Source: Dimorphilus gyrociliatus
Lineage: Eukaryota; Animalia; Annelida
Assembly (NCBI GenBank): GCA_904063045.1
Contig: CAJFCJ010000184.1
Coordinates: 10,212-47,903 of the forward strand
Direction: 5' to 3'
DNA: 37,692 nt
Shown piece after piece: positions 4,020 through 22,240 of this stretch. The position numbers and the translations under genes were made by a program. The notes under the pieces are model-generated. The model was given only the letters and a program-made list of their open reading frames with translations. It did no database searches and was not told the origin of the DNA. Position 1 is the first letter of the stretch; each line of letters begins with the position of its first letter.

Positions 4020-4660
4020 ATAAAGTAAAAAACAAACTATTTTTTTAAAAAAGCCAGTTTCTGACATGTTTCTACTGATGTTTTATTCCAATTATCTTTT
4101 ATAGCAACTTTTAATTTTTTTCTTATTTTAAATATTTTATTTCGGCCTTAATTATTGCTCACAAGTTTTCTATAGAGGTACAATCAGGAGATTGAGCAAG
4201 TTAGCTTTCAACTTTGATATCACACTCTTTATAAAATTTCTTTGCTAGCTTACATGTATGCTTGGGATCGTATCTTGTACAAAAATAAAATCGACTAATT
4301 AGATTTTATAGACTCGGTTAACAAACAAGCGCCTAGCATGTTGCAATAATACGGTGCATTTATTTTTATGTCGATAAATTTCAGTTCTCCAACACCATGA
4401 TATGAAAAACAGCCCCAAACCATCACAGAACCACCTCAAAATTTTATAGTCTTCTTGATATTTTGAATATCAAGTTTAGAAAACTTTGTACGCCATACTT
4501 TTAGACTTCTATCGGAAAATATAATAGTTTTTAGCGTGCGTTATGGTATTTACACCCACCTCATATTTGCATTGTATATCTAGCTTCAATATGCCTTGGT
4601 TGTAAGAGGAACTTAAAACATGGTGTAAAGGCTTTGATGTCCATTTTATTCAAGTAATTT
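4020..4660 (-). pseudogene. Old Tc1-family transposase remnant
   Basis: Minus-strand fragments IKAFTPCFKFLLQPRHIEARY, GGSVMVWGCFSYHGVGELKFID, DPKHTCKLA, AQSPDCTSIENL and WNKTSVETCQKL are colinear with the transposase at 5296..6156 and broken by stops and frameshifts. Confidence 0.85.
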
Positions 4661-7538: not shown

Positions 7539-8025
7539 CATTTTTTTCTACAGGCTGTAAATACAAGATCTGTGAATAGAAACTCAAAATATACACTAAT
7601 AAGTAGCTTGATTGTAAAGGGGTAACCAACTAAGTATATATAAACGATATAGTAAATCATGATACTCGTTTTAATCCCTATTTACAAGAGCTACTATACA
7701 GCAAATCGAAGTTACTGGGATTTAATGTAAAATCCTATCCGACATCATCCAAAATACTAAATAACGATAATATTAATTTGTTAGCTGTAAAATTTTTATA
7801 TAAAAAAATCTAGACATGAAGCTTATACTAAGCTATCATCCTAATGATTTATTAAAATGAACTATGCTTTTATTTTCGGATATAATCATTTTTTTTAAGG
7901 ACTGGAAGTCTTCTTTCTCAATTTCTCTATTTTTATAAAAACATTGTTTTTAATTGAAGCAGGTCATATTTTAAAGGCAATGGAAAAATAGTGTCCGAGA
8001 AGTCTAAATTTTAATCCAACAACAT

Positions 8026-8157
8026 TTAAAAAAAAGCATTCAGTTTAAAATCAAGTTACATAAAAAATTCATCAACTAACTATCAAAGAAAATTTTCAGC
8101 AAACATCAACTAAAGCATCTGGGATATATCCCACCTTACCTTTCCAGGTATTGATTT
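8026..8157 (-). mobile_element. Solitary, severely 5'-truncated LINE 3' tail
   Basis: Diverged copy of the 11789-11915 tail (CATCAACTAACTATCAAAGAAAA..CAGCAAACATCAACTAAAGCATCTGGGATATATCCCACCTTACCTTTCCAGG). Confidence 0.85.
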
Positions 8158-8332: not shown

Positions 8333-10378
8333 TTAAATTTTTGTCCATAGTTTTTGTAGAGACGTATATTTTCTCAAATTTATCATACTTTTCGTATAAA
8401 TTATATCCATATGGTTTAAAAACGTATTGTCGATTATAATACGTTCAATACCTTTGATTTTACTGATTGCAAATAGCCTACCAGAACCGATTCCACAAGA
8501 GCTCAAATTTAAAGTTTTAAGGTTTTTTAGTTTAGAAAAATTATGCATATCCATGTCGTGTAATTTATTATTATATCCTAAATTCAGAATCTCTAGACTA
8601 GTAGCACTATCTATTTTAGACACTGATTCCCTATCTAGATTGCAATTCTGTAAAGAAAGACTTTTTAACTTTGGAAGTTTGATTATATGATTTACTATTT
8701 TTGTAAAATGTTCGTTATTTAGACCCACATTAGATATAAATACACAACTGAGGGGTCTAAGCGAAGTGATATTGTTTAACCCATTCTTAATAATACAGTT
8801 ATTTATTCCAACACTTTTGAGCTTATGAAGTTTTGTAATGACATATAAATCCGTTATAATAGTATTACTTATACAATCTAGATATAAAACTTCTATTTCT
8901 TTTAACTCTATAATGTCCCTAATACTATTTCCTTCTACACTAAATCTAGAAATATATAAGTTCTTTAGATTTGGAATCTGTGCTATTAGTTTTAAATCAA
9001 GCTGAGTTAGAGACTTATACAAGGTTAAACTTAAGGACATTAGTGTTTTGGGAATATTTGTAAAAAAATCGTTGTGATTTAGCGAACAAATGATAAAACG
9101 TAAATCTTCAATATTCTTTAACGTTTTTAAATCATCTTGCATAAGAATATTGTAAGATATATTATTAGATTCAAGATTTATACTTTTTAGGTTTAATAGA
9201 GAAACCGTTTTCAAAAAAGGAAGTAATCTTAATAAATTGGTATCTTGAAGGTCCAAAGTTCTGAGAGCAACGAGATATTTTAGGGAGTTGTTATTGTTAG
9301 GTTTATAAAGTCTATCTAAGTAAGGAATATGACACCCTCTCAAGCTCAAATTTTCAAGTTTTTTTAGCTTTCTTACCCCCATAATATTTTCCTCTGTAAA
9401 ACAAAAATTGTAGCTTAAATCTATTGTTACTAAATTCTCAAGCACATAAATATTATCTAAAGCATCAGATTCTGGTAAACTACACTTACTAAGACGCAAA
9501 ATTCTTAACATTTTTAAATTAAGAATCGAATACAAAACTTCAGTAGTAATAGCATTATTCCCGCTCAGGTCTAAATTCACAAGTTTTGTTAAACTAAAAC
9601 AAACCTCCAATAAGAACCCACCAGAATTTATTTCACAATCACGCAAACTGAGACTCTCAAGTTTATCATCTCCTAAAATACTTTCTATTAAAGTATTCTT
9701 TATATCTGCATTTTCATTTAAATTTATCGTTTTAACACTTTTTAAATATAGTAGTACTCCACTCAAGAAGTAAGTAGAAAGGCGACAGTGTGATAGATTT
9801 ATATTTTCCAGCATTTCCAACTTTACAATATCATACAAATCTGCTTGATTTATATTATAATTATGTGATAAATTAAGCACCTTCAAGCTTTTTAGCTTGT
9901 GAATTCCTATTAAACTTCCAGGTTTGAGCTGACAACTAGAAAGATTGAGTGAAATTAAGTTATATAATTGAAATATATTTATCATATCTTTTTTTTCTAA
10001 CTCTGTATTTTTCGAAATTGATAAACCACAGATATTAGATTTTCTCTTTATATTCGATAAAAAGTTCGCTTCTAAAGAAGAGTTGTTTAAAAAAACTATT
10101 CTTATATTCTTTAAGTCGAAAATAGACGTTAAACCATTTTTTGTTAAATTATGTGTATGCAAATGGCAGCTTGTATTATAATAAGATATAAAGTAGTAAA
10201 TACTGCAAATTTTGACAAAACTAAGATTATTAAAAAAACATAAGGGATAAAAACTAGATATTTTTGTTATCCATATATGGAATATTAGAAACGAAATGGC
10301 AGTTATTTCTAACCAACGAGATATAATAACAGGGCAAGTAGAAGTAGGATCCAAAGAGGATTTAATGAATAAAAGCAT
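8333..10378 (-). CDS. Leucine-rich repeat protein; 5' end abuts a retroelement tail
   Basis: 681 aa ORF with more than 20 LxxLxLxxN/C repeats of ~24-25 aa. The annotated ATG (10376-10378) lies inside the retroelement tail sequence, so the true start is uncertain. Confidence 0.85.
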   Translation of the reverse strand: MLLFIKSSLDPTSTCPVIISRWLEITAISFLIFHIWITKISSFYPLCFFNNLSFVKICSIYYFISYYNTSCHLHTHNLTKNGLTSIFDLKNIRIVFLNNSSLEANFLSNIKRKSNICGLSISKNTELEKKDMINIFQLYNLISLNLSSCQLKPGSLIGIHKLKSLKVLNLSHNYNINQADLYDIVKLEMLENINLSHCRLSTYFLSGVLLYLKSVKTINLNENADIKNTLIESILGDDKLESLSLRDCEINSGGFLLEVCFSLTKLVNLDLSGNNAITTEVLYSILNLKMLRILRLSKCSLPESDALDNIYVLENLVTIDLSYNFCFTEENIMGVRKLKKLENLSLRGCHIPYLDRLYKPNNNNSLKYLVALRTLDLQDTNLLRLLPFLKTVSLLNLKSINLESNNISYNILMQDDLKTLKNIEDLRFIICSLNHNDFFTNIPKTLMSLSLTLYKSLTQLDLKLIAQIPNLKNLYISRFSVEGNSIRDIIELKEIEVLYLDCISNTIITDLYVITKLHKLKSVGINNCIIKNGLNNITSLRPLSCVFISNVGLNNEHFTKIVNHIIKLPKLKSLSLQNCNLDRESVSKIDSATSLEILNLGYNNKLHDMDMHNFSKLKNLKTLNLSSCGIGSGRLFAISKIKGIERIIIDNTFLNHMDIIYTKSMINLRKYTSLQKLWTKI

Positions 10379-10485
10379 TTAATTAAACATCAACTTACAT
10401 AAAAAACTCATCAACTAACTATCAAAGAAAAATTTTCAGCAAACATCAACTAAAGCATCTGGGGATATATCCCCACCTTACCTTT
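10368..10485 (-). mobile_element. 5'-truncated LINE tail (type A)
   Basis: Near-identical to 11790-11907, including the GGGGATATATCCCC palindrome and ACCTTACCTTT. Confidence 0.9.
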
Positions 10486-10496
10486 TTAAAATTTTT

Positions 10497-10572
10497 TAAA
10501 ATAAAAGCATTTAATAAACCACATAACCTACATAAAAAACTCCCCACTACTGCTAAGAAAAAGTTTCAGCTA
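10497..10572 (-). mobile_element. 5'-truncated retroelement tail (type B)
   Basis: AATAAAAGCATTTAATAAACCACATAACCTACATAAAAAACTCCCCACTACTG matches the tail variant at 16388-16455. Confidence 0.8.
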
Positions 10573-10604
10573 CACTTAAAAATTTTTTTAAAATATTTTT
10601 TTTT

Positions 10605-11665
10605 AAATAAAAGCATTTAATTAAACATCAACTTACATAAAAAACTCATCAACTAACTATCAAAGAAAAATTTTCAGCAAACATTAACTAAAGCATCTGG
10701 GGATATATCCCTGCCATACCCTTCCGGGCTTCGACTCTCGGAGGTCTTGAGGAGTGGCTATTACCACTCCCCACAGTTTGCGGACAGGCCTGCTCCCTTC
10801 AGAGCTAGCACCCACCCATTCCACATACACCTTGCGGTGCCTGCAGCGCGACACCTGTGCATCTCGAGTTACGGCAACAGCTGCACAGGCCACCGAGGAC
10901 TATCGGCATCCCGTTCCCCTCCTAGGAACACCTCCATCCAGCTACCCGAAGACAGAGGTTTTTGGTTGTTGTCTGACTCTTAGCTACTCATAATCACTGC
11001 TTACTGGACTTAGGTCTCTGCCAGTTATACTCAACATCTACACTTCAATCAGCTTGCCTATCTTCATGGCAAGGAGCTTAATCATTGCATCTCCATTCCT
11101 AACTCGTTCTGGCGAGCGGGTCCAGCTAGGCCATCCAGATACCTCTTCTATTGCCAGACTCCGCTATGATACCTACCTCTACATGGTACTCCTGCCGACC
11201 ACTTCTACTTTGTTTGCGGCGCTGACCTAGGCAGGGTCTAGGGCGTTCCTTTGCTTGGGCAATCCCCGGCCGTGGGTCGTGAGGACTTCGACCCAGTCGT
11301 GCAGATACCTTCCCATCCTGAGTGATCCTACCGTCCCTGTGTCAGGGGTGTCTACTCATACCCAACCACAGGCAGGCTCACTGACTTCCCTGTCTCTGCC
11401 TCATACACAAGCCTTCACTAAGCTCTTCAGCTCATCTGCCTTCGAGTCCCTGCATGGTACTCTGCACACCCCACCTCACTACTAGTCACGCATCCTACTA
11501 CGCTAGTTTTATAGTATCTTACCAAGGAGTATCCTCACAGTATCGACTCAGACCCAGATAGATTGTGGGTATCTGGGGATGCCTAGTATCCATGCTTGCA
11601 CTGTCATTAGCCGTCTCCCGACGTTACCAAGACGAACCACGTGGAGGTTACAGTGCTGTCGTCTC
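10605..11665 (-). mobile_element. Non-autonomous non-LTR element (SIDE/SINE-like), copy 1, with ribozyme head and LINE-shared tail
   Basis: ~1060 bp, GC-rich, near-identical to 16385-17428, with no credible long ORF. It shares with the LINE the 3' tail, CTCGGAGGTC, and the ~40 bp CACCGAGGACTATCGGCATCCCGyTCCCCTCCTAGGA (LGGERDADSPR on the minus strand). Confidence 0.85.
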
Positions 11666-11760
11666 AGCTCTTCAGCTCATCTGCCTTCGAGTCCCTGCAT
11701 GGTACTCTGCACACCCCACCTCACTACTAGTCACGCATCCTACTACGCTAGTTTTATAGT
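11421..11760. repeat. 95 bp direct repeats (11421-11515 and 11666-11760) flanking the ribozyme segment
   Basis: AGCTCTTCAGCTCATCTGCC...CGCTAGTTTTATAGT occurs twice here and once more at 17191-17285. Confidence 0.95.
11598..11665 (-). ncRNA. HDV-like self-cleaving ribozyme, intact copy
   Basis: Minus-strand RNA: GAGACGA(P1) CA GCACUGU(P2) A ACC(P3) UCCACGU(L3) GGU(P3') UCGUCUU(P1') GG(P1.1) UAA CGUC-GGGA-GACG(P4) GCUAAUG(J4/2, catalytic C) ACAGUGC(P2'). A G1-U wobble lies at the predicted cleavage site. Folded by hand. Confidence 0.9.
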
Positions 11761-11937
11761 AAAAAAATTTTTAAAAAAAATTTTTTTTAAAATAAAAGCA
11801 TTTAATTAAACATCAACTTACATAAAAAACTCATCAACTAACTATCAAAGAAAAATTTTCAGCAAACATCAACTAAAGCATCTGGGGATATATCCCCACC
11901 TTACCTTTCCAGGCATTGGTTCTCGGAGGTCGAATAT

Positions 11938-13047
11938 TTAGCTCTCCTGATTAGAAAGGCTATAAGCCCTTCTCTTCAGGATAGCTTGAAGATACCTGGC
12001 TGTTGAGGCCAGGACCAAATAACACCGAGGACTATCGGCATCCCGCTCCCCTCCTAGGAGCACCCCGACTGTGGTATCACGATCGAGGTTTTTGTTAAGT
12101 ATCGAAGAGTATATTTCTATACTCCTCCTATCCTCTTCGTATCCAGGACAATCAAGAAGTAGGTGATAGATATCTTCTTCTACTCCTCTCTTGCACACTA
12201 GACACTTAGAGTAAAATTCACTGGATACCTTTCCTAGCATGACTAGGCGAGGTACAAAGTGGAATGCTCCTGCCCTCAACTTGAGGAGAGCATACCATCC
12301 AGCGCCTCTGTACCTCAAGGATGCTCTGGGCACGTTCACATCAGCGACTCGCCACCTATCTCTCATCCTTGAGATAACGCTAGAGTGTCTAGCGATTTTC
12401 CTACTCTCCAGACTCCGCTTGGCAATAGAAGGAGCTTGCCTTGCCTCACTGTCCAGTGCAGTAGGCGCATACCTTTTGAGCCATCGGGTTGTACGCGTCA
12501 CCCATGTTGTTTTCTTTGCTTTTATAGGATTATCAATGAAGCTACTCATGTATGTACGTGAGTATCTCCACTTCCTATAGGCCCTGGTTCGCATCCTGGC
12601 AGCGAACACATCGACCATCTCAATGCATAAGTCCTTATACATTGATAGTCTGTTGAACATCTTTGAGACATTCATTGCCATTGCTACTCCGTTGTCCATG
12701 ATCCTCTGCAGTCTTCTGCATCGAGTGGAGTTCATACCAATCATTTCTACACCATAGGTTACGATTGGCATGAGCACTCCTCTGAGAACCCTTACCTTGT
12801 GGTACATTCCAATGGAGGGATTACGCAAGAGTGTTTGACACTGGAGCAGTGCCAATCGTCCCTGCTCCACTCTCCTATCCAGATGAGCATCGTCACCAAG
12901 GTCATTGGATATCTGGATACCAAGGTAGGTATAGGACTGCACCATCGGAATCACTTGATTACCATAGTGTATGTCACTATCCACCAGTGGTTGGGACGCT
13001 CCTACTATCATGTAGCCACTCTTTGCGCCATTGACACCCATCCCCAT
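11938..13047 (-). CDS. LINE ORF C-terminus (RT thumb region and CCHC zinc knuckle)
   Basis: SYTYLGIQI, YGVEMIG and the CLVC..H..DC motif, continuing the RT ORF. Confidence 0.9.
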   Translation of the reverse strand: MGMGVNGAKSGYMIVGASQPLVDSDIHYGNQVIPMVQSYTYLGIQISNDLGDDAHLDRRVEQGRLALLQCQTLLRNPSIGMYHKVRVLRGVLMPIVTYGVEMIGMNSTRCRRLQRIMDNGVAMAMNVSKMFNRLSMYKDLCIEMVDVFAARMRTRAYRKWRYSRTYMSSFIDNPIKAKKTTWVTRTTRWLKRYAPTALDSEARQAPSIAKRSLESRKIARHSSVISRMRDRWRVADVNVPRASLRYRGAGWYALLKLRAGAFHFVPRLVMLGKVSSEFYSKCLVCKRGVEEDIYHLLLDCPGYEEDRRSIEIYSSILNKNLDRDTTVGVLLGGERDADSPRCYLVLASTARYLQAILKRRAYSLSNQES

Positions 13048-14252
13048 ATGCTACACCACTGTTGTAGCTTAATGAGGTTGAATGCCATATCCTCAGCGCT
13101 TTCTGCTAGCAGTACGGTGTCGTCGGCGAAGAGCAGTCCAGGTACTCTTTCAGCCAACCCATCTACCTCTACACCTCTCATTCCTGAGAAGATGTCATTA
13201 ATATAGAGATTGAATAGGAGGGGAGAGAGTGGACAACCTTGTCTCAGCCCCACAGTATAGTCGAAGCTATCTGTCATAGAGTCCCCTATTCGTACTCTAC
13301 ATTGCACATTCCTGTACAATCTGCTAACAAATCCGCGGTAGCATGCAGAGACTCCAATATCTGCCATCTTACCAAGCAGTTTGTCGTGAGGCACCATGTC
13401 ATAGGCTTTCTTAAAGTCTATGAATACTACAAAGGTGTCCTTACCTTTTATTTTTCTTCTCTTTAGAAGCTCTGTGAGAGTAGATGCTTGTGTTACGCAT
13501 TCCTCGAGACTTCTGAATCCTGCTTGGTATCTGCCTAGGAGATTATTCTCTTCCACCTCTTGTCTCATTTTTATTTCTACTATCTTAGTAGCAATCTTGA
13601 GCTGGGAAGAGATTAAGGATATCCCCCTGTAGTTGGAAGGATCACTCCTCTCTCCTTTCTTGAAGATAGGAACAATGATGCTAACATTGTCCCTAGAGGG
13701 AATGTCTTGGTTAATCAGTTCATTCATCTGAGAGACCATTGCCTTAGTCATCAGGCTTCTTCCCTCTCTATCACCCTCCAGGAGCTTATAGAACTCTGAT
13801 GGTATCTCGTCTGCTCCTGGCGCCTTGTTTCGCGGTGTTACTTTGATTGCTAAACGTACTTCAGGCCATTTTACGGTGATAGATCCTTGTATTACTGGGA
13901 TGTCCCTATATTGACCTTGTGAGAGTGACTTGAAGTAGCTGTACCAGGAGTTTAGGATTTGATCCTTGGTGACTGCTAACTTATTAGTCTGTGGATCTCT
14001 GATAGCAGCATTACTGACTGCACCTCTTACAGCTCCTCTGAAAGAGTTGATCCACCTCCACATGTCCCGAGACCTGTTGGCAGTCGTAAGGTCTATGCCT
14101 TTCTGGACATACCTATCCCAGTTTTTCTTTCGACAGGCTAGTATGAGTTTTTTGGATCTAGTCCATAGTTCCTCATACTTAGCTTTGTCTTCTTCGGTGT
14201 TCAATCCTGATGCTCTCAGCTTCCTTCGCTGGTCAATGCATCTGATTGTCAC
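13008..14252 (-). CDS. LINE reverse transcriptase domain (fragment of a frameshifted polyprotein)
   Basis: 414 aa ORF containing the non-LTR RT motifs. It joins ORF 11938..13047 by a frameshift at a G-run near 13040 (QQWCSIWG/MGVNGAKS). Confidence 0.95.
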   Translation of the reverse strand: MTIRCIDQRRKLRASGLNTEEDKAKYEELWTRSKKLILACRKKNWDRYVQKGIDLTTANRSRDMWRWINSFRGAVRGAVSNAAIRDPQTNKLAVTKDQILNSWYSYFKSLSQGQYRDIPVIQGSITVKWPEVRLAIKVTPRNKAPGADEIPSEFYKLLEGDREGRSLMTKAMVSQMNELINQDIPSRDNVSIIVPIFKKGERSDPSNYRGISLISSQLKIATKIVEIKMRQEVEENNLLGRYQAGFRSLEECVTQASTLTELLKRRKIKGKDTFVVFIDFKKAYDMVPHDKLLGKMADIGVSACYRGFVSRLYRNVQCRVRIGDSMTDSFDYTVGLRQGCPLSPLLFNLYINDIFSGMRGVEVDGLAERVPGLLFADDTVLLAESAEDMAFNLIKLQQWCSIWGWVSMAQRVAT

Positions 14253-14429
14253 CTTATCAAGGATAACTGTCCTCTTCTCCTCTTTGAAGTCATAGAGGTT
14301 GAGATTATTCAGTATCCTCTTTGCAGTGGTACCATCTCTGGCTCATCTGTCCAGTGCTTATGATGGATGATCCTTTCCCACTGCTGGGCCATTCTCTTCC
14401 TACTTACTATACTCTTTGGCTGTTCAGCA

Positions 14430-15258
14430 GGTACTTGAAGCCCTGTGATCTTGATTAGAACTGGTTTATGATTGGACAGATCCCAGTTCTCGATCACTTG
14501 TTGACTAATAGGGCTTTCACCTTTAGTCTGGACAAGGAAGTCTATAGGAAATCCTCGTCTGTTCCCGTCGACTCTCCATCAAGTCCTCCTTGTCATTGTG
14601 AGGATCTCAGGGTTAGCAAGGGTTATTTGCTCCGCTAATAACCGCTTCTGCACAGTCTCAGGCTTGGAGTTACAGTCCCCTACGGTGACCACCTCGTCAA
14701 ACCGATCCTTGTGCTTCCTCAGCAACGCACCAAGTCTCTTGTATGCCTGCTTGCGGTTATCGAGTCCATGAGGAATGTATACATTGACACACAGTACCTT
14801 CTTAGGTCTTGTGTCAAGAGCAACTGCTATGAAATTGCTATCTACATGGACTAGGGTGACTGGTTCCTAATCCGGTTCCTGACAGCAAGGAATAGTCCTC
14901 GCTTGCCCAGGTCGTCCTCTTTGTCTGAGGAGTATATGGTGTAGCCACCTATCTTAGGTGTTCTGCCTGCCCATAGAGTCTCCTGTATGGCTACAATGTC
15001 AGGCTTCTCGCGCGACAGGTATAGCCATATCTCAGACAATTTGGTTCGGATGCCATTGATGTTATAGCTAAGGATCTTGAGAGTTTCGATCTCTTGCTTA
15101 GGACATCGTGTGGTCTTACTCCGACCTTTGGTGGACTCCTTGATCCACCAATTCTCTCTTCTAGCTAAGGCTTTTAGCCTATCATTGCTAACAAGAGGCT
15201 GTTTGTTGACTATTACATCTAGTCTTTGGCAACCATTTGGTTGCCTTATTCGCTTCAC
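14430..15258 (-). pseudogene. LINE apurinic-like endonuclease domain, frameshifted
   Basis: Motifs are split across ORF 14851..15258, an unlisted frame (VNVYIPHG..VTVGDCNS) and ORF 14309..14497 (WDLSNHKPV). Confidence 0.85.
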
Positions 15259-15791
15259 CTTGGCCTGCTTGAGGCCGAGGTGTTTTCAAGCTTGGAGCTC
15301 ACCAGGTCCCTTTGACCCATGGGAGTCCCCACAAACAATACTTTCTTCCAGTCTCTAGGCTCTTATTCCCAGCCCCTGGTAAGCCAGGCTGGCGGCCATT
15401 CATGATCGTCGGGCTGAGTCAACCTTCTCAGCCCGGTAAAAGAACCTTCTGGGTTCTCTAGAACCCTTCAGGGGTGGCCTTGTCCAACACCCTGGAAAAT
15501 GCTATGTTTGGGCCTCTTTGGCCCATTAAGTAGACATTGTGGCTCCTCGCCCTTCGAGCCACTCCTCGAGCTGGGCCCTTTTGGGTGCCTCAGCATGACG
15601 AAGCCTTCATTGATCAGCGCAGCATAAACCCTCTTTATTGTGAGGTTAGCTGCTCTGATCTCCAGCTTGTCCATCCATGTCCTCACCTGACAGGTCATGG
15701 ATATTCTTATTTTCTTTTTCTTTAGAATCTCCATCACCTGTTCAGGTGAGGTAAAGACTGGTACCTGCAGATATGCATACTTCCAGTATGA

Positions 15792-16384
15792 NNNNNNNNN
15801 NNNNNNNNNNNNNNNNNNNNNNNNNNNNNNNNNNNNNNNNNNNNNNNNNNNNNNNNNNNNNNNNNNNNNNNNNNNNNNNNNNNNNNNNNNNNNNNNNNNN
15901 NNNNNNNNNNNNNNNNNNNNNNNNNNNNNNNNNNNNNNNNNNNNNNNNNNNNNNNNNNNNNNNNNNNNNNNNNNNNNNNNNNNNNNNNNNNNNNNNNNNN
16001 NNNNNNNNNNNNNNNNNNNNNNNNNNNNNNNNNNNNNNNNNNNNNNNNNNNNNNNNNNNNNNNNNNNNNNNNNNNNNNNNNNNNNNNNNNNNNNNNNNNN
16101 NNNNNNNNNNNNNNNNNNNNNNNNNNNNNNNNNNNNNNNNNNNNNNNNNNNNNNNNNNNNNNNNNNNNNNNNNNNNNNNNNNNNNNNNNNNNNNNNNNNN
16201 NNNNNNNNNNNNNNNNNNNNNNNNNNNNNNNNNNNNNNNNNNNNNNNNNNNNNNNNNNNNNNNNNNNNNNNNNNNNNNNNNNNNNNNNNNNNNNNNNNNN
16301 NNNNNNNNNNNNNNNNNNNNNNNNNNNNNNNNNNNNNNNNNNNNNNNNNNNNNNNNNNNNNNNNNNNNNNNNNNNNNNNNNNNN
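15792..16384. other. Assembly gap (593 N)
   Basis: Run of N characters. Confidence 1.
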
Positions 16385-17367
16385 TTTAAAATAAAAGCAT
16401 TTAATAACACATAACCTACATAAAAAACTCACACTACTATAAGAAAAATTTCAGCAAACATCAACTAAAGCATCTGGGATATATCCCTCCATACCTTCCG
16501 GCTTCGACTCTCGGAGGTCTTGAGGAATGGCTATTACCACTCCCCACAGTTTGCGGACAGGTCTGCTCCCTTCAGAGCTAGCACCCACCCATTCCACATA
16601 CACCTTGCGGTGCCTGCAGCGCGACACCTGTGCATCTCGAGTTACGGTAACAGCTGCACAGGCCACCGAGGACTATCGGCATCCCGTTCCCCTCCTAGGA
16701 ACACCTCCATCCAGCTACCCGAAGACAGAGGTTTTGGTTGTTGGTCTGACTCTTAGCTACTCATAATCACTGCTTACTGGACTTAGGTCTCTGCCAGTTA
16801 TACTCAACATCTACACTTCAATCAGCTTGCCTATCTTCATGGCAAGGAGCTTAATCATTGCATCTCCATCCTAACTGTTCTGGCGAGCGGGTCCAGCTAG
16901 GCCATCCAGATACCTCTTCTATTGCCAGACTCCGCTATGATAACTACCTCTACATGGTACTCCTGCCGACCACTTCTACTTTGTTTGCGGCGCTGACCTA
17001 GGCAGGGTCTGGGGCGTTCCTTTGCTTGGGCAATCCCCGGCCGTGGGTCGTGAGGACTTCGACCCAGTCGTGCAGATACCTTCCCATCCTGAGTGATCCT
17101 ACCGTCCCTGTGTCAGGGGTGTCTACTCATACCCAACCACAGGCAGGCTCACTGACTTCCCTGTCTCTGCCCATACACAAGCCTTCACTAAGCTCTTCAG
17201 CTCATCTGCCTTCGAGTCCCTGCATGGTACTCTGCACACCCCACCTCACTACTAGTCACGCATCCTACTACGCTAGTTTTATAGTATCTTACCAAGGAGT
17301 ATCCTCACAGTATGACTCAGACCCAGATAGATTGTGGGTATCTGGGGCGTGCCTAGTATCCATGCTT

Positions 17368-17428
17368 GCACTGTCATTAGCCGTCTCCGACGTTACCAAG
17401 ACGAACCACGTGGAGGTTACAGTGCTGT
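17368..17428 (-). ncRNA. 5'-truncated HDV-like ribozyme lacking the P1 5' strand
   Basis: Same core as 11598-11658, but GAGACG is replaced by A-rich sequence (AAAAAC), so P1 cannot form. Confidence 0.75.
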
Positions 17429-17507
17429 GTTTTTTATATTTCAAGATCCTCACAGTATGAACTCAACCCAGATAGATTGGGTATCTGGGGTGCTAGTATC
17501 CATGCTT

Positions 17508-17574
17508 GCACTGTCATTAGCCGTCTCCCGACGTTACCAAGACGAACCACGTGGAGTTACAGTGCTGTCGTCTC
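17508..17574 (-). ncRNA. HDV-like ribozyme directly downstream of the LSU rRNA
   Basis: Identical to 11598-11665 except for one missing C in P3 (GUAACUCCACG versus GUAACCUCCACG), which may be a homopolymer error. Confidence 0.8.
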
Positions 17575-17629
17575 ACCATGCGTTCATTTTATCTCTCTAG
17601 ATGAGCTTTAATTTCTACAATGTGTAGGA

Positions 17630-17883
17630 TAGAACGACGGTAAGGACTGCGCCGTGCCTCAAATGCTCGCTTGCGCTCGCACCTTACAGCAGGCCGTCCA
17701 TGTCGTGTCGTTTTCACGTCCGCCTTCCGACCTTGGGCCCGGTTTCTAGCTTAGAGGCTTTCAGCTATACTCCGGTAGACGTAGCTCCGCGACATGCCCG
17801 TCCGGACAATCGCTCCACCAGTGGTCTCATAGGTCCTTCCTTTCGTACTACTCCCTACTCCCCGCAGTCGTCTGTAGGTAGGA

Positions 17884-17930
<47 letters not shown>

Positions 17931-18515
17931 ATTAGTGGGTGAACAATCCAACACTTCGGCGCTCCTGCACGCCGATGGTAGGAAGAGCCGACATCGAAGA
18001 ATCAAAAAGCCGCGTCGCTTTCTGCGCTCGACGGCCACAAGCCAGTTATCCCTGCGGTAACTTTTCTGTCACCCACCTCACAACTGCGGTGTCAAGGTGG
18101 GATCCCTAGGCCTGGGTTTCCCCGCACGTACTCATCATCGTACGCTCAAGCACTCTCAAGCCCTTATGCTCCACGCGGGTTTTCCCGTCCCGCTGCGAGT
18201 ACCTTCGGTCAGCTGCGTTCTGCTCCTGCAGCTGTGCCGCCCCAGCCAAACAGTCCATCTAGCATCCATCCCCGAGGGTGTGCCATGAGCTCCGACGCGT
18301 AGTGGTCTTTCACTTCCGCGTTGCCGCTCCCACCTCCCTACATCACGTCGCAGCTCACCGCTCTGCTACACTACTGTGAAGCTCAACAGGGTCTTCTTTC
18401 CCCGCCTACATCGCCAAGCCCGTTCCCTTGGCACGTGGGTTCGCTAGTCTGCAGGTAGGGACAGTGGGAATCTCGTCTTTCCATTCATGCGCGTCACCAA
18501 TTAAGTGACGAGGCG

Positions 18516-18554
<39 letters not shown>

Positions 18555-20270
18555 GACCCGCGCTTAAGAGAGTCTCCTCTCCTTCACGTAACGAGCACCG
18601 GGCAGAAATCACTTCGTATCCCTTCACGAAGCTATGTTTTTATTAAACAGTCAGATTCCCCATGCCACCTTGAGTTCCATAAGAACCAACACTTCTCCCG
18701 AAGTTACGCATCCATTTTGCCGAATTCCCTTACCTGCGTTCAACATACGCCAGAGGCTTCTCACCTTGGAGACCTGTCGCGGTTTAAGTACGGTCCCGGG
18801 GCCCGCTCGCGCGTCCTTTTCACTGCTGGGCCCGGCGGCCGCAGGGTCGCCCCCTGCCAGCGGCCCGCGCCCTTCGCTGACTGACTCATCTCCACGCGCG
18901 CGCCGCACGCACCAGAGCCGGATGCTCTGCGCGGCCGGACGGCCCATGTCGAACGCCCGATCTCCCGTCGCCGCTCGGCCCCGAGGGATAGGACTCTTAA
19001 CCTATTTCTCTTTCGCTACAGACCGTGCTCCGTCGCTTAGCACCGCCTCACTCCCTTCTGATCTACATCGCCAGGGAAAACCTTCTCCTCCTCGGCCTTC
19101 GCCATTCTCAGACGAATTACAACTACTGCCACCAAGATAAGCGCTGCCGGCACCTCCACCGCACCTCGCAGTGCGCCTTCCACAGTCCCGGCACGCCCCC
19201 CTACCCGCGGGCGCGCATCGGTCGACGCGTCAGCACCGTCAATTTTAGGGCCAGCTGAATTCCGTAGGTACGTTGTAACACGTTTCTTACCGGCTGCCGA
19301 CTTTCATGGCCACCGCCCTACCGTCTTCATTCACCTACCGCCTTCCCTCTCTGCCACGCCGTTCGGTACCTTATCGCGCCGCCAGGTTGAATCCTCTTCG
19401 CCAGTCCTGCTTACCAAAACAAGCCCACTACGCTCGTCCAAGTCCGCGCTGCGTATGCCACGCCGCGCTGAGCACGTTCGGAGTTCGTTCGTCGCCTTAA
19501 GGCTAAATGATCCTAGTTCTACCGCACTCCTCTTCCACTCGCGCGCTGTCCTGAGAGACATTTCGGGGGGAACCAGCTACCAGACTGTTCGATTGGTCTT
19601 TCGCCCCTACACCCAGTTGACGTCAAAGAGTTGCATATCATTACGACTCGCCACCTCCAGCGCATTTTCATCCGCCTTCGTAGCCACCAGGCATAGTTCA
19701 CCAGTCTATCGGGTCTTAACCACGCCTCTCCACCGCTCTCGCGCGCGTCCGGGGCTCTCTCCCTTCCACTCGCTGCGTAGTTAAACTCCTTGGTCCGTGT
19801 TTCAAGACGGGACCGACTCTGTCGGCTCCACATGCAATTTCACTTTTTCATCATATTCTGTCTTCGGTCACCCTACTAATACGCTATCGGTGTCCACCTG
19901 TATTTAGCCTTAGATGCGCACTGCCACCTCTTCACGCTGCACTACCGAGCAACGCTACTCACTTCCTAGCGCGGCGTCCCTACGGGGCTAACACCCTCTC
20001 AGGCCGGCCCTTCAAGGCTCGCTCGGGCCGCCGCTCCGCTGACATCTCGCCGGGGCGATTACACCGTCGGGCTCCTTCCTCTTCGCTCGCCGCTACTGGG
20101 GAAATCCTCGTTAGTTTCTTCTCCTCCCTTTACTCATATGCTTAAATCAGAGGGGTTCTCGTCACTACTGACCATTCAGGCACGCGCCGTCCTCGCTGCC
20201 GCTCCGGCGCCTCGCTTCCTGCCGCGCCCTTCCTCGCCAGTGGACCCAAACGATCCCTTGCATGTGGCTC
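17630..20270 (-). rRNA. LSU rRNA with fused 5.8S region (ends approximate)
   Basis: 5.8S-like start CAAGGGATCGTTTGGGTCC..GAGGAAGGGCGCGG, then ACCCCTCTGATTTAAGCATAT, CCCGTCTTGAAACACGGACC, CTCTTAAGGTAGCCAAA, the peptidyl-transferase region and the sarcin-ricin loop. No ITS2 is apparent. Confidence 0.97.
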
Positions 20271-20289
20271 TTCTATCTCCATTCCTCGC

Positions 20290-21639
20290 TGATCCAACGA
20301 CAGGTTCTCCTACCGTTGCCTTGTTACGACTTGTATCAGATCTAGAACCCTGCGCTCACTCACTCGTTGTTCGTTCGCACCTGATTCCATCTTCGATAGC
20401 GACGGGCGGTGTGTACAAAGAACAGGGACTCATTCATCGCTCCATACTGAGACAGCGATTACTAGCAATTCCTCGTTCCTGCGCCCCTTCCAGGGCACAT
20501 TCCCTCTCGATCGCATTTCTCTCTCCTTCCTTCCTCCTGCGACCACTGTAGTGCGCGTGCAGCCCAGTCCATCTAAGGGCATCACTGACCTGTTCTTGAC
20601 CCCTCCTTCCTGCGCTTGGCGCGCCAGTCACTCTCGTCGAGGGTCTCACTAATTACCAGACTTAACCCAAGGATCACTCCATTTGTCGTTAACGGCCATG
20701 CACCACTTTCCGACCTATCGCGTACCACGCTCATCCGGTCGTCGGCACTGGTAAGCTGTCCCGCGTTGAGTCAAATTAAGCCGCACACTCCACTCCTTGT
20801 GGTGTTCTTCCGTCAATTTCCTTTAAATTTATCGCTTGCGCGCGTACTCTCCCCGTAGCTCTACTCTAGATTTCTCGTCCCCGTCACACTCGTAACAGGG
20901 CGTAAGCATCGTTAACTGCTGGAACTACTACGGTATCTAATCGTATTCGATACTCCAGCCTACGTCCTTGATCATCGGACTCGCCCCTGGCCAGCGCTTT
21001 CGCCTCAGTTTCTCCTAGGCAGGTCATCGAATTTCACCTCTAGCTGCCTAATAGACTGGCCCCTGGCCGCTCCTCATCCTCTACCGTTCTGGGACATTCC
21101 ACCCCTTGATCGGATGTTTTATACACCAGTTGGCTAGGCAGACTACGGACCTTTTAATCGCAGCAAAAATCATAGACACCCCTGGAGCTGGTATTACCGC
21201 GGATGCTGGCACCAGACTTGACCTCCAGTTACTAGCATCTTGTTTACAAATCCTTCTAAACAAACGTTTCTTCACTACCGCCCTGCTTGCAGGCTTCGGT
21301 AAGTTTCGTGCCTGCTGCCGTCCTTGGACCTGGTAGCCGTCTCTCAGGCTCCCTCTCCGGAATCAAACCCTAATTCCCCGTACCCGTATTCGTCTAAATA
21401 GGCCTTTACCCTACTTACTAACTGATGGGCTGACTTCTTACTCTCCGCCGCTCCGCTATACCTGTAGCCCACTGGCTACACGCCTTGCGTATTCCCCTCA
21501 GTTTCCCGAGGTTGTCCGCCCGCGCAGATCAAATCAAAGTCCGTTACTGAGCCGTACGCCGCTCCCCCGAAGGTTCGCTTACACATGCATGGCTAAATCT
21601 GTGAAACTAGCGTCCACGTCAGACAGAATCAATCTGATT
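20290..21639 (-). rRNA. SSU rRNA (~1.35 kb, microsporidian-type)
   Basis: 5' ATCAGATTGATTCTGTCTGACGTGG, the 530 loop GTGCCAGCATCCGCGGTAA, GTACACACCGCCCGTC, and 3' AAGTCGTAACAAGG..GTAGGAGAACCTG..GGATCA. Confidence 0.98.
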
Positions 21640-22240
21640 CTCTTCGTAGTTTACACTACACTCTCCGCACTCCGAGCTCCTCACCTTTCACCAAGGCCGT
21701 CCCGCTCACTACACCTATTACCTTCACTTTTACTGCATATTCGTCAATTTAGTATGACACTCGAAAGAGTTTTTGAAAAGTACTTTTTTCCTCCTCATTA
21801 TAGGCGAATTTTTTAGTTACATCTGTCTGCGATTCACTACGAGCATCCCAAATTTCCGAATCCGAGTTTTCGGGTATGAGGTCAGCACCACTACTGATCA
21901 GAACACTCTATATGCCACGATCTAAAAGCTGTCACAAAATTGACAGTATTTTTTGACACAATATGACACATATCGCGCACAATAATAATACACATATGTA
22001 GGTAGTGTATAGTAGATGTTGTGTTGTTGTGTATTTACATTTGTGTAATATGAGGTGGTATACTTAGGTAGATACGTTTTAAAACATAAAAATTTTCAAG
22101 CAAGTAGGGGTTAGAATAATTTTAAAAAATCACAGAATATATCATGTATATCTTGTTTTAGTATATGAAGCTGTATAATTTATATTTTTTAAGGTTAAAG
22201 TATAATAAGAATTTTTAAAATAAATTGAAAATAAAAAACA

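Follow-up and report, generated by a model that had tools for sequence, protein, structure and literature searches.

The nearest described analogues of the element reported here are the R2/R1 hybrid SIDEs of Drosophila (Eickbush and Eickbush, 2012, PMC3414825). These are short, rare elements without a reverse transcriptase (RT), in which an HDV-like ribozyme is followed by the 3' end of another LINE, of the APE type; they reside in the rDNA, show variable 5' junctions, are presumed to use the machinery of the LINE that donated the 3' end and are excised from an rRNA co-transcript. The element is alike in these respects and would, in our reading, also be excised from such a co-transcript; here, too, a ribozyme head that is absent from the donor of the 3' end is combined with that donor's 3' end. 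Unlike the hybrid SIDEs, however, it has a microsporidian host, sits in the 3' flank of the LSU rRNA gene, which it leaves undisrupted, and carries a 630-nt body, whereas in the former the ribozyme is fused directly to the 3' end. Further, the assembly holds no ribozyme-bearing autonomous donor, and no clear target-site duplication was found.

R2 and the R2 SIDEs also resemble the model proposed below, in that the ribozyme sets the 5' end of an RNA derived from the rRNA co-transcript and cleavage at the exact 5' end is accompanied by junctions varying via microhomology and template jumps (PMC3414825, PMC3774820). For R2 ribozymes that cleave at the exact 5' end, the variable 5' junctions have been ascribed to chance microhomologies priming second-strand synthesis (PMC3774820), and template jumps by the R2 reverse transcriptase are documented in vivo (PMC3414825). 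R2 itself differs in having a restriction-like endonuclease and in inserting inside the 28S gene, whereas the partner LINE at our locus is of the APE type and lacks a ribozyme. Strictly defined, a SIDE is what an internal deletion leaves of its own partner: the element does share its 3' end with the LINE, but not its ribozyme. NARTc and L1Tc of Trypanosoma cruzi likewise pair a non-autonomous element with an APE-type LINE, and the first ~70-77 nt of NARTc are an HDV-like ribozyme (PMC3185411, PMC3383444). However, L1Tc and NARTc have this head in common, and it is also a promoter (Pr77), whereas here the LINE is headless and transcription presumably comes from the rDNA. Given that the partner LINE has no ribozyme head, the element is neither a strict SIDE nor NARTc-like. 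As in stringent LINE/SINE pairs, its last ~140 nt and an upstream hairpin block are shared with the LINE, but its copy number is four, as opposed to hundreds or more, and it lacks a Pol III head, for which reason it is not a SINE. Host phylum, position behind the LSU and the 630-nt body set it apart from R2, the hybrid SIDEs, NARTc and SINEs alike.

The strategy of a ribozyme-headed retroelement that rides rRNA transcription is known from insects and trypanosomes, and we found no report of it for microsporidia. The sole microsporidian entries in a 2024 review of rDNA transposons are MITEs, in the rDNA of Nosema (PMC10946416), and a full-text literature search found no paper mentioning both microsporidia and HDV-like ribozymes.

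The locus and the copies of the element

The window, by which we mean the whole analyzed stretch of 37,692 nt (C184:10212-47903 of a 78-Mb assembly), is AT-rich (~25% GC) apart from one GC-rich island (10.6-21.7 kb). It is scaffolded, with an N gap between the second element copy (E2) and the LINE at 15793-16384. The main features of the array are:

17634-21639, minus strand: microsporidian-type rDNA unit, LSU and SSU by Rfam
20287-21639, minus strand: microsporidian-type SSU rRNA (Rfam, 1178 bits)
17634-20178, minus strand: LSU rRNA (Rfam, 1490 bits; LSU 3' end checked)
17446-17574, minus strand: partial element head, first ~129 nt, directly behind the LSU; 94% identical to 11531-11666
17429-17445: A/T filler between the partial head and E2
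16385-17428, minus strand: element copy E2, first 6 nt missing, so that its own P1 strand is lost
11787-16384, minus strand: partner LINE with APE, RT and a hint of a C-terminal zinc finger, interrupted by the N gap
11666-11761, minus strand: internal element fragment, positions ~150-245, 99% identical to 11418-11516 and abutting the first base (G1) of E1
10605-11665, minus strand: element copy E1, full length at 1061 nt, with a ribozyme head, a ~630-nt non-coding body and a LINE-like 3' region and tail
C137:25838-26898: element copy from the genome-wide census
C222:6717-7756: element copy from the genome-wide census

In the order of minus-strand transcription, the SSU and LSU are followed by E2, the LINE, E1 and several tail fragments. 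The two copies in the window had been noted at the outset as ~1.06-kb units without an RT or a tRNA-like head, and on these points the initial annotation holds: 10601-11659 and 16385-17428 are 97.2% identical over 1061 nt, and a tblastn search with 190 LINE-type proteins recovered no RT relic, its sole match being the already-known relic of the LINE ORF end (element positions 703-789, E 6e-5). ARAGORN predicted no tRNA in the element; no Rfam gene reached its gathering score, and a Pol III head (tRNA, 7SL or 5S) was found neither by ARAGORN nor by Rfam even at E up to 10. The only sense ORF of at least 40 aa in the two window copies is one of 69 aa that starts with GTG and lies over the tail region.

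That the element might exist only as this pair was excluded by a census of the assembly, which contains four full copies on three contigs (two on C184, one each on C137 and C222), with E1 97-99% identical to the other three. Of these, three stand at the same place behind an LSU rRNA gene; the fourth, E1, is the sole copy not adjoining rDNA and sits just behind the LINE tail, 4.7 kb along the same array. No copy was found at an unrelated locus in the 78 Mb. The assembly has three microsporidian rDNA units, and in all three the LSU 3' end is separated by 55-59 nt from the G1 of an element, after which the LINE follows. This setting of the element is absent from the initial annotation.

The candidate ribozyme head

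Two HDV-like ribozymes are recognizable in the window:

11598-11665, minus strand: ribozyme of E1; G1 is 11665, and the predicted cleavage lies between 11666 and 11665
17508-17574, minus strand: complete ribozyme of the partial head, matching the descriptor

The initial call of a ribozyme head is borne out in that every helix of an HDV-like ribozyme can be drawn in the first 68 nt of the element (11665 down to 11598) and in that covarying relatives occur in metagenomes. P1 comprises 7 bp with G1.U as its first pair, and P2, likewise of 7 bp, closes the fold. P3 has 3 bp and a 7-nt L3, and P1.1 can form between the CC of this loop and the GG after P1'. P4 has 4 bp and a GNRA loop; J4/2 is G-C-U-A-A-U, carrying the cytosine in its usual context. 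The head is accordingly predicted, from its sequence, to cleave itself just 5' of G1.

A descriptor of this fold, which was composed after the sequence had been seen, found two places in the window and no others, 11665-11598 and 17574-17508, and nothing but element heads in the related contigs; it had no match when the GC-rich 10.8 kb were block-shuffled 300 times (6.5 Mb in total). The Rfam HDV models, which are unable to score pseudoknots, stayed below gathering (RF02682, 25.9 bits against 44; RF00094, 25.6 bits against 50), and a scan of the whole assembly with RF02682 returned no matches, the model being too weak even for the true sites. Thermodynamic support is likewise absent, with z-scores near 0 for the ribozyme, the 45-nt block shared with the LINE and the tails, in nested folds that cannot show a pseudoknot. 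A search of the 78-Mb assembly with the 23-nt core found element heads only, with 5 exact matches and 0 control matches; a sixth element head carries a 1-nt deletion.

As the ribozyme is invariant across the six copies of this genome, covariation evidence comes from distant relatives only. Metagenomes were scanned with the 23 core bases specified and P1' and P4 left unconstrained, which yielded 46 contigs representing 37 distinct sequences. Of these, 27 can form a perfect 7-bp P1, with 24 different P1 sequences, against a mean of 1.85 and a maximum of 6 when the upstream 32 nt were shuffled. Next to P3, 35 of the 37 have a P2 of 5 bp or more, against a shuffled mean of 5.0. Among the 27, the first base is G in 20 and its pairing partner U in 24. 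By these counts, the putative helices P1 and P2 covary among the metagenomic relatives that share the core.

Several of these metagenomic ribozymes sit at the heads of LINEs with APE and RT. Two such LINEs lie in the sense orientation within eukaryotic LSU rRNA genes, and their RTs are 28-30% identical to that of the window LINE; they may constitute an undescribed rDNA-specific LINE lineage. Both have intact-looking ORFs (1610 aa in L045, Ga0307510_10015622; 1733 aa in L065, Ga0307507_10016335), and in L065 ~130 nt of the LSU are missing around the region of the classical R2/R1 site.

The partner LINE and the shared 3' blocks

The LINE encodes an RT domain (RVT_1, 1.7e-29) with the N-terminus of an endonuclease domain (Exo_endo_phos, 3e-4) and a weak zf-RVT match. 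Its nearest RT proteins are 38-44% identical and include those of Smittium culicis, which are LINE-1 or Tx1-like by their source names, and Hamiltosporidium magnivora (40%). The assembly contains four copies at ~96% and a 72% relative on C228. Since the reading frames of all assembled copies are broken by frameshifts or stops, activity is probably past. The copy on C181 was considered as an independent insertion, but it shares its downstream flank with C222 at 96%, and hence the two represent one ancestral insertion. Identity of no more than 96% over this common flank (C222:1-2005 and C181:65724-67760) suggests that the parasite genome either has diverged haplotypes or has undergone a segmental, subtelomere-like duplication.

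In C222 and C137, which have no gap at this point, the 5' end of the LINE is readable and consists of an AT-rich, lysine-rich leader. Neither Rfam at E up to 10 nor a relaxed descriptor found a ribozyme at this end in either contig, and blastn (word 7), tblastx and tblastn with the 190 proteins matched element positions 1-700 to no part of the LINE, its 5' end included. A LINE without a ribozyme head implies that the element is not an internal deletion of it, and the lack of any LINE match over positions 1-700 rules out such a derivation from the adjacent copy; the pairing on the model of SIDEs and NARTc that the initial annotation had proposed is therefore not upheld. Its further suggestion of descent from a diverged relative finds no support in the 72% LINE on C228, which offers a 20-nt tail match only; indeed, the 630-nt body matches nothing, this relative included. 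The LINE also has a near-perfect 75-nt hairpin near its AT-rich 5' part (15678-15754, minus strand; L022 5921-5995, minus strand), which matches the mir-392 model at E 1e-5, below gathering, and is probably merely an inverted repeat of the LINE.

The 3' sequences common to the element and the LINE, and the related fragments, are:

10891-10932, minus strand: ORF-end block in E1, 95% identical to LINE 12023-12064, with unalignable flanks
10605-10746, minus strand: 3' tail of E1, with box (10737-10746), hairpin (10699-10711) and AU-rich end; 92% identical to the LINE tail 11763-11931
10492-10570, minus strand: 5'-truncated tail-only fragment of type B, the tail type of the C137 and C222 element copies
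10361-10485, minus strand: 5'-truncated tail-only fragment of type A (LINE type), 98% identical to the LINE tail
8025-8153, minus strand: tail-only fragment with 92% identity to the LINE tail, which follows an LRR-protein ORF at a distance of 180 nt

The shared tail, hairpin, box and ~40-bp relic of the ORF end were thus correctly picked out in the initial annotation. Over the terminal tail, element positions 920-1057 align with LINE positions 4468-4603 (the last 138 nt, 92%). The ORF-end block is the 42-45-nt core of a 74-nt stretch shared at 80% and corresponds to the last codons of the LINE ORF, with ..LGGERDADSPR.. in element and LINE alike. Between this block and the tail, and over the first 700 nt, the element and the LINE do not align. 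The 45-nt block can form a 6-bp hairpin in both, with one compensatory change from U-A to C-G between the element and the LINE; this single compensatory event is a hint that the block is a common RNA signal.

The tails are mosaic. E1 combines an element-type proximal with a LINE-type (A) distal part, the latter being 99% identical to the tail fragment at 10368-10473, and E2 is mixed; the C137 copy has an element-type part followed by type B, and the C222 copy a LINE-type proximal part followed by type B. The tail-only fragments differ in their truncation points and have counterparts in C137, C222 and C181. We take the truncated and mosaic tails to be signs of repeated reverse-transcription events, as far as sequence can tell.

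Junctions, proposed propagation and possible dispersal

An alignment of all heads and rDNA flanks shows four different 5' partners joining the element, all at G1. First, in C222 and C184 the rDNA flank meets G1 directly. Second, in C137 the rDNA flank is 17 nt shorter and is followed by element positions 274-289 and then by G1, with AGAGA microhomology between the flank and the element fragment. Third, also in C137, element positions 1-163 precede the G1 of the full copy; a degenerate form of this junction in the window is made up of 17446-17574, the 17-nt A/T filler and E2 from position 7. Fourth, at E1 the LINE tail and an A/T run are followed by element positions 150-245 (11666-11761) and then by G1, which we interpret as a template-jump type of 5' junction. 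As DNA breakage would have no reason to prefer G1, the four junctions favor an RNA intermediate. Variable 5' junctions and 5' truncations are thus combined with a constant 3' end, as in target-primed reverse transcription, in a few events that all lie within rDNA-linked arrays. No target-site duplications are readable in the A/T-rich, low-complexity junctions, where units stand head-to-tail beside A/T runs at the tail ends.

We favor, with moderate confidence, the view that the element is a non-autonomous non-LTR retroelement living in the 3' flank of a microsporidian rRNA gene. It most likely rides rRNA transcription and borrows the enzymes of the LINE for its copying. Here, RNA polymerase I, or any read-through transcription, would pass the LSU 3' end into the element, and the HDV-like ribozyme, cutting 5' of G1 just behind the LSU, would free an element RNA whose 5' end is fixed. 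Within its last ~350 nt, this RNA would present the LINE 3' blocks, namely the 45-nt hairpin block, the box, the GC hairpin and the AU-rich tail, and since these blocks are common to the element RNA and the LINE, the LINE reverse transcriptase could start target-primed reverse transcription on it in trans. New copies would then land next to existing tails or back at the rDNA flank, with their 5' ends sealed through template jumps and microhomology.

Of the mobile family trans-mobilised by the LINE that was originally envisaged, the mobilisation is backed by the boundaries at G1 and the mosaic and truncated tails. The notion of a family fares less well, with only four full copies, three of them at one site, and no unbroken LINE among the assembled copies, and activity of both element and LINE is now probably past. 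Also weighing against a retroelement is that target-site duplications are not legible and that E1 and the type-B tail fragment are colinear with their source, as would follow from one-piece copying via read-through RNA or DNA.

If confirmed, our interpretation would extend the strategy of riding rRNA and being released by a ribozyme to a reduced, fungal-related parasite, and would add a new niche, the LSU 3' flank, where the element spares the rRNA gene that it exploits. It supplies a compact, testable 68-nt candidate ribozyme, and it would be a natural case, relevant to the template choice of LINE reverse transcriptases, of one lineage's ribozyme united with the 3' end of an unrelated APE-type LINE.

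A rather unlikely alternative is that the element is a fixed rDNA spacer (3' external transcribed spacer), no longer or never mobile, with a ribozyme that either is a relic or acts in rRNA processing. In that case, rearrangement at the DNA level, through unequal exchange, slippage or repair in the tail-rich array, would have produced E1 and the duplicated heads. The presence of the element at the same LSU distance in all three rDNA units, the want of copies at unrelated loci, the dead LINEs and the colinearity of E1 plus the type-B fragment with C137 (10492-11665, 95.8%) would all suit such a spacer. So would the growth of divergence away from the rDNA: pairwise values are 0.1% for the rDNA, 1.1-2.3% for the element bodies and 3.5-4.1% for the adjoining LINEs, a pattern compatible with turnover of, or constraint on, the element but fitted equally well by gene conversion outward from the rDNA. 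However, DNA breakage does not favor the meeting of four unrelated partners with the element at G1, and upstream of the head there is no tail or other homology to mediate unequal exchange. Moreover, the C137 rDNA junction differs from those of C222 and C184 by the 17-nt loss from the flank and the internal fragment with microhomology, and the distal tail of E1 is of the LINE type, unlike that of its presumed source.

It is improbable that the element is instead the 5' leader of a composite RNA of element and LINE that is released by the ribozyme, with its copies being products of early termination or recombination. The LINE does follow the element directly and on the same strand in C184, C137 and C222, has no ribozyme or recognized promoter of its own, and has metagenomic relatives with the same ribozyme class at their 5' ends; but a complete tail, an A/T run and an extra truncated tail precede the LINE 5' end, as would separate insertions, and E1 has no LINE behind it. 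Finally, although the contig contains scaffolding gaps (Ns at 15793-16384), the region is repetitive and E1 is confined to C184, it is very improbable that E1 is an artefact of assembly or scaffolding that re-uses reads of the rDNA flank, for its own substitutions, different (LINE-type) tail and unique 5' junction are unexpected of a collapsed or misplaced copy.

Apart from how the retroelement spreads, an intact ribozyme stands 55-59 nt behind the LSU in 3/3 rDNA units, even where the element that follows is truncated or overwritten. We think it unlikely, yet worth stating, that this ribozyme is now part of the host rRNA pathway, where its cleavage would end or 3'-process the pre-rRNA, with the element-LINE train being fed by Pol I read-through.

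The rDNA units themselves appear in a larger shared block. C184 and C222 have in common the sequence from 509 nt upstream of the SSU (22148) down to the LINE 3' tail, and upstream of it they are unrelated; beyond the LINE tail, the flanks of C184, C137 and C222/C181 are mutually unrelated. Across loci, the block spans 11790-22148 of the window, C222:2038-12332 and C137 from 21146 to the contig end, and it comprises 509 nt of 5' spacer, SSU, LSU, element and LINE. Its end is the LINE 3' tail where this is readable (C184, C137), with a gap at that point in C222, and no target-site duplication was found around it. Whole rDNA units with the LINE may have been dispersed, possibly as read-through retrocopies, a proposal that is more speculative than the recruitment of the ribozyme by the host.

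Two further observations were made in the window. Its AT-rich portion upstream of the array contains several pairs of inverted repeats, 47-181 nt long and 70-96% complementary (4892-5279/6371-7385 and 35-193/4894-5089), some of which are also present in C181. The LRR ORF (8333-10378, minus strand; 681 aa; LRR_4, 2e-17) is flanked by the LINE-type tail fragments at 10361-10485 and 8025-8153, and its first ATG falls within the upstream one; possibly the ORF is a gene that the retroelement array has trapped.
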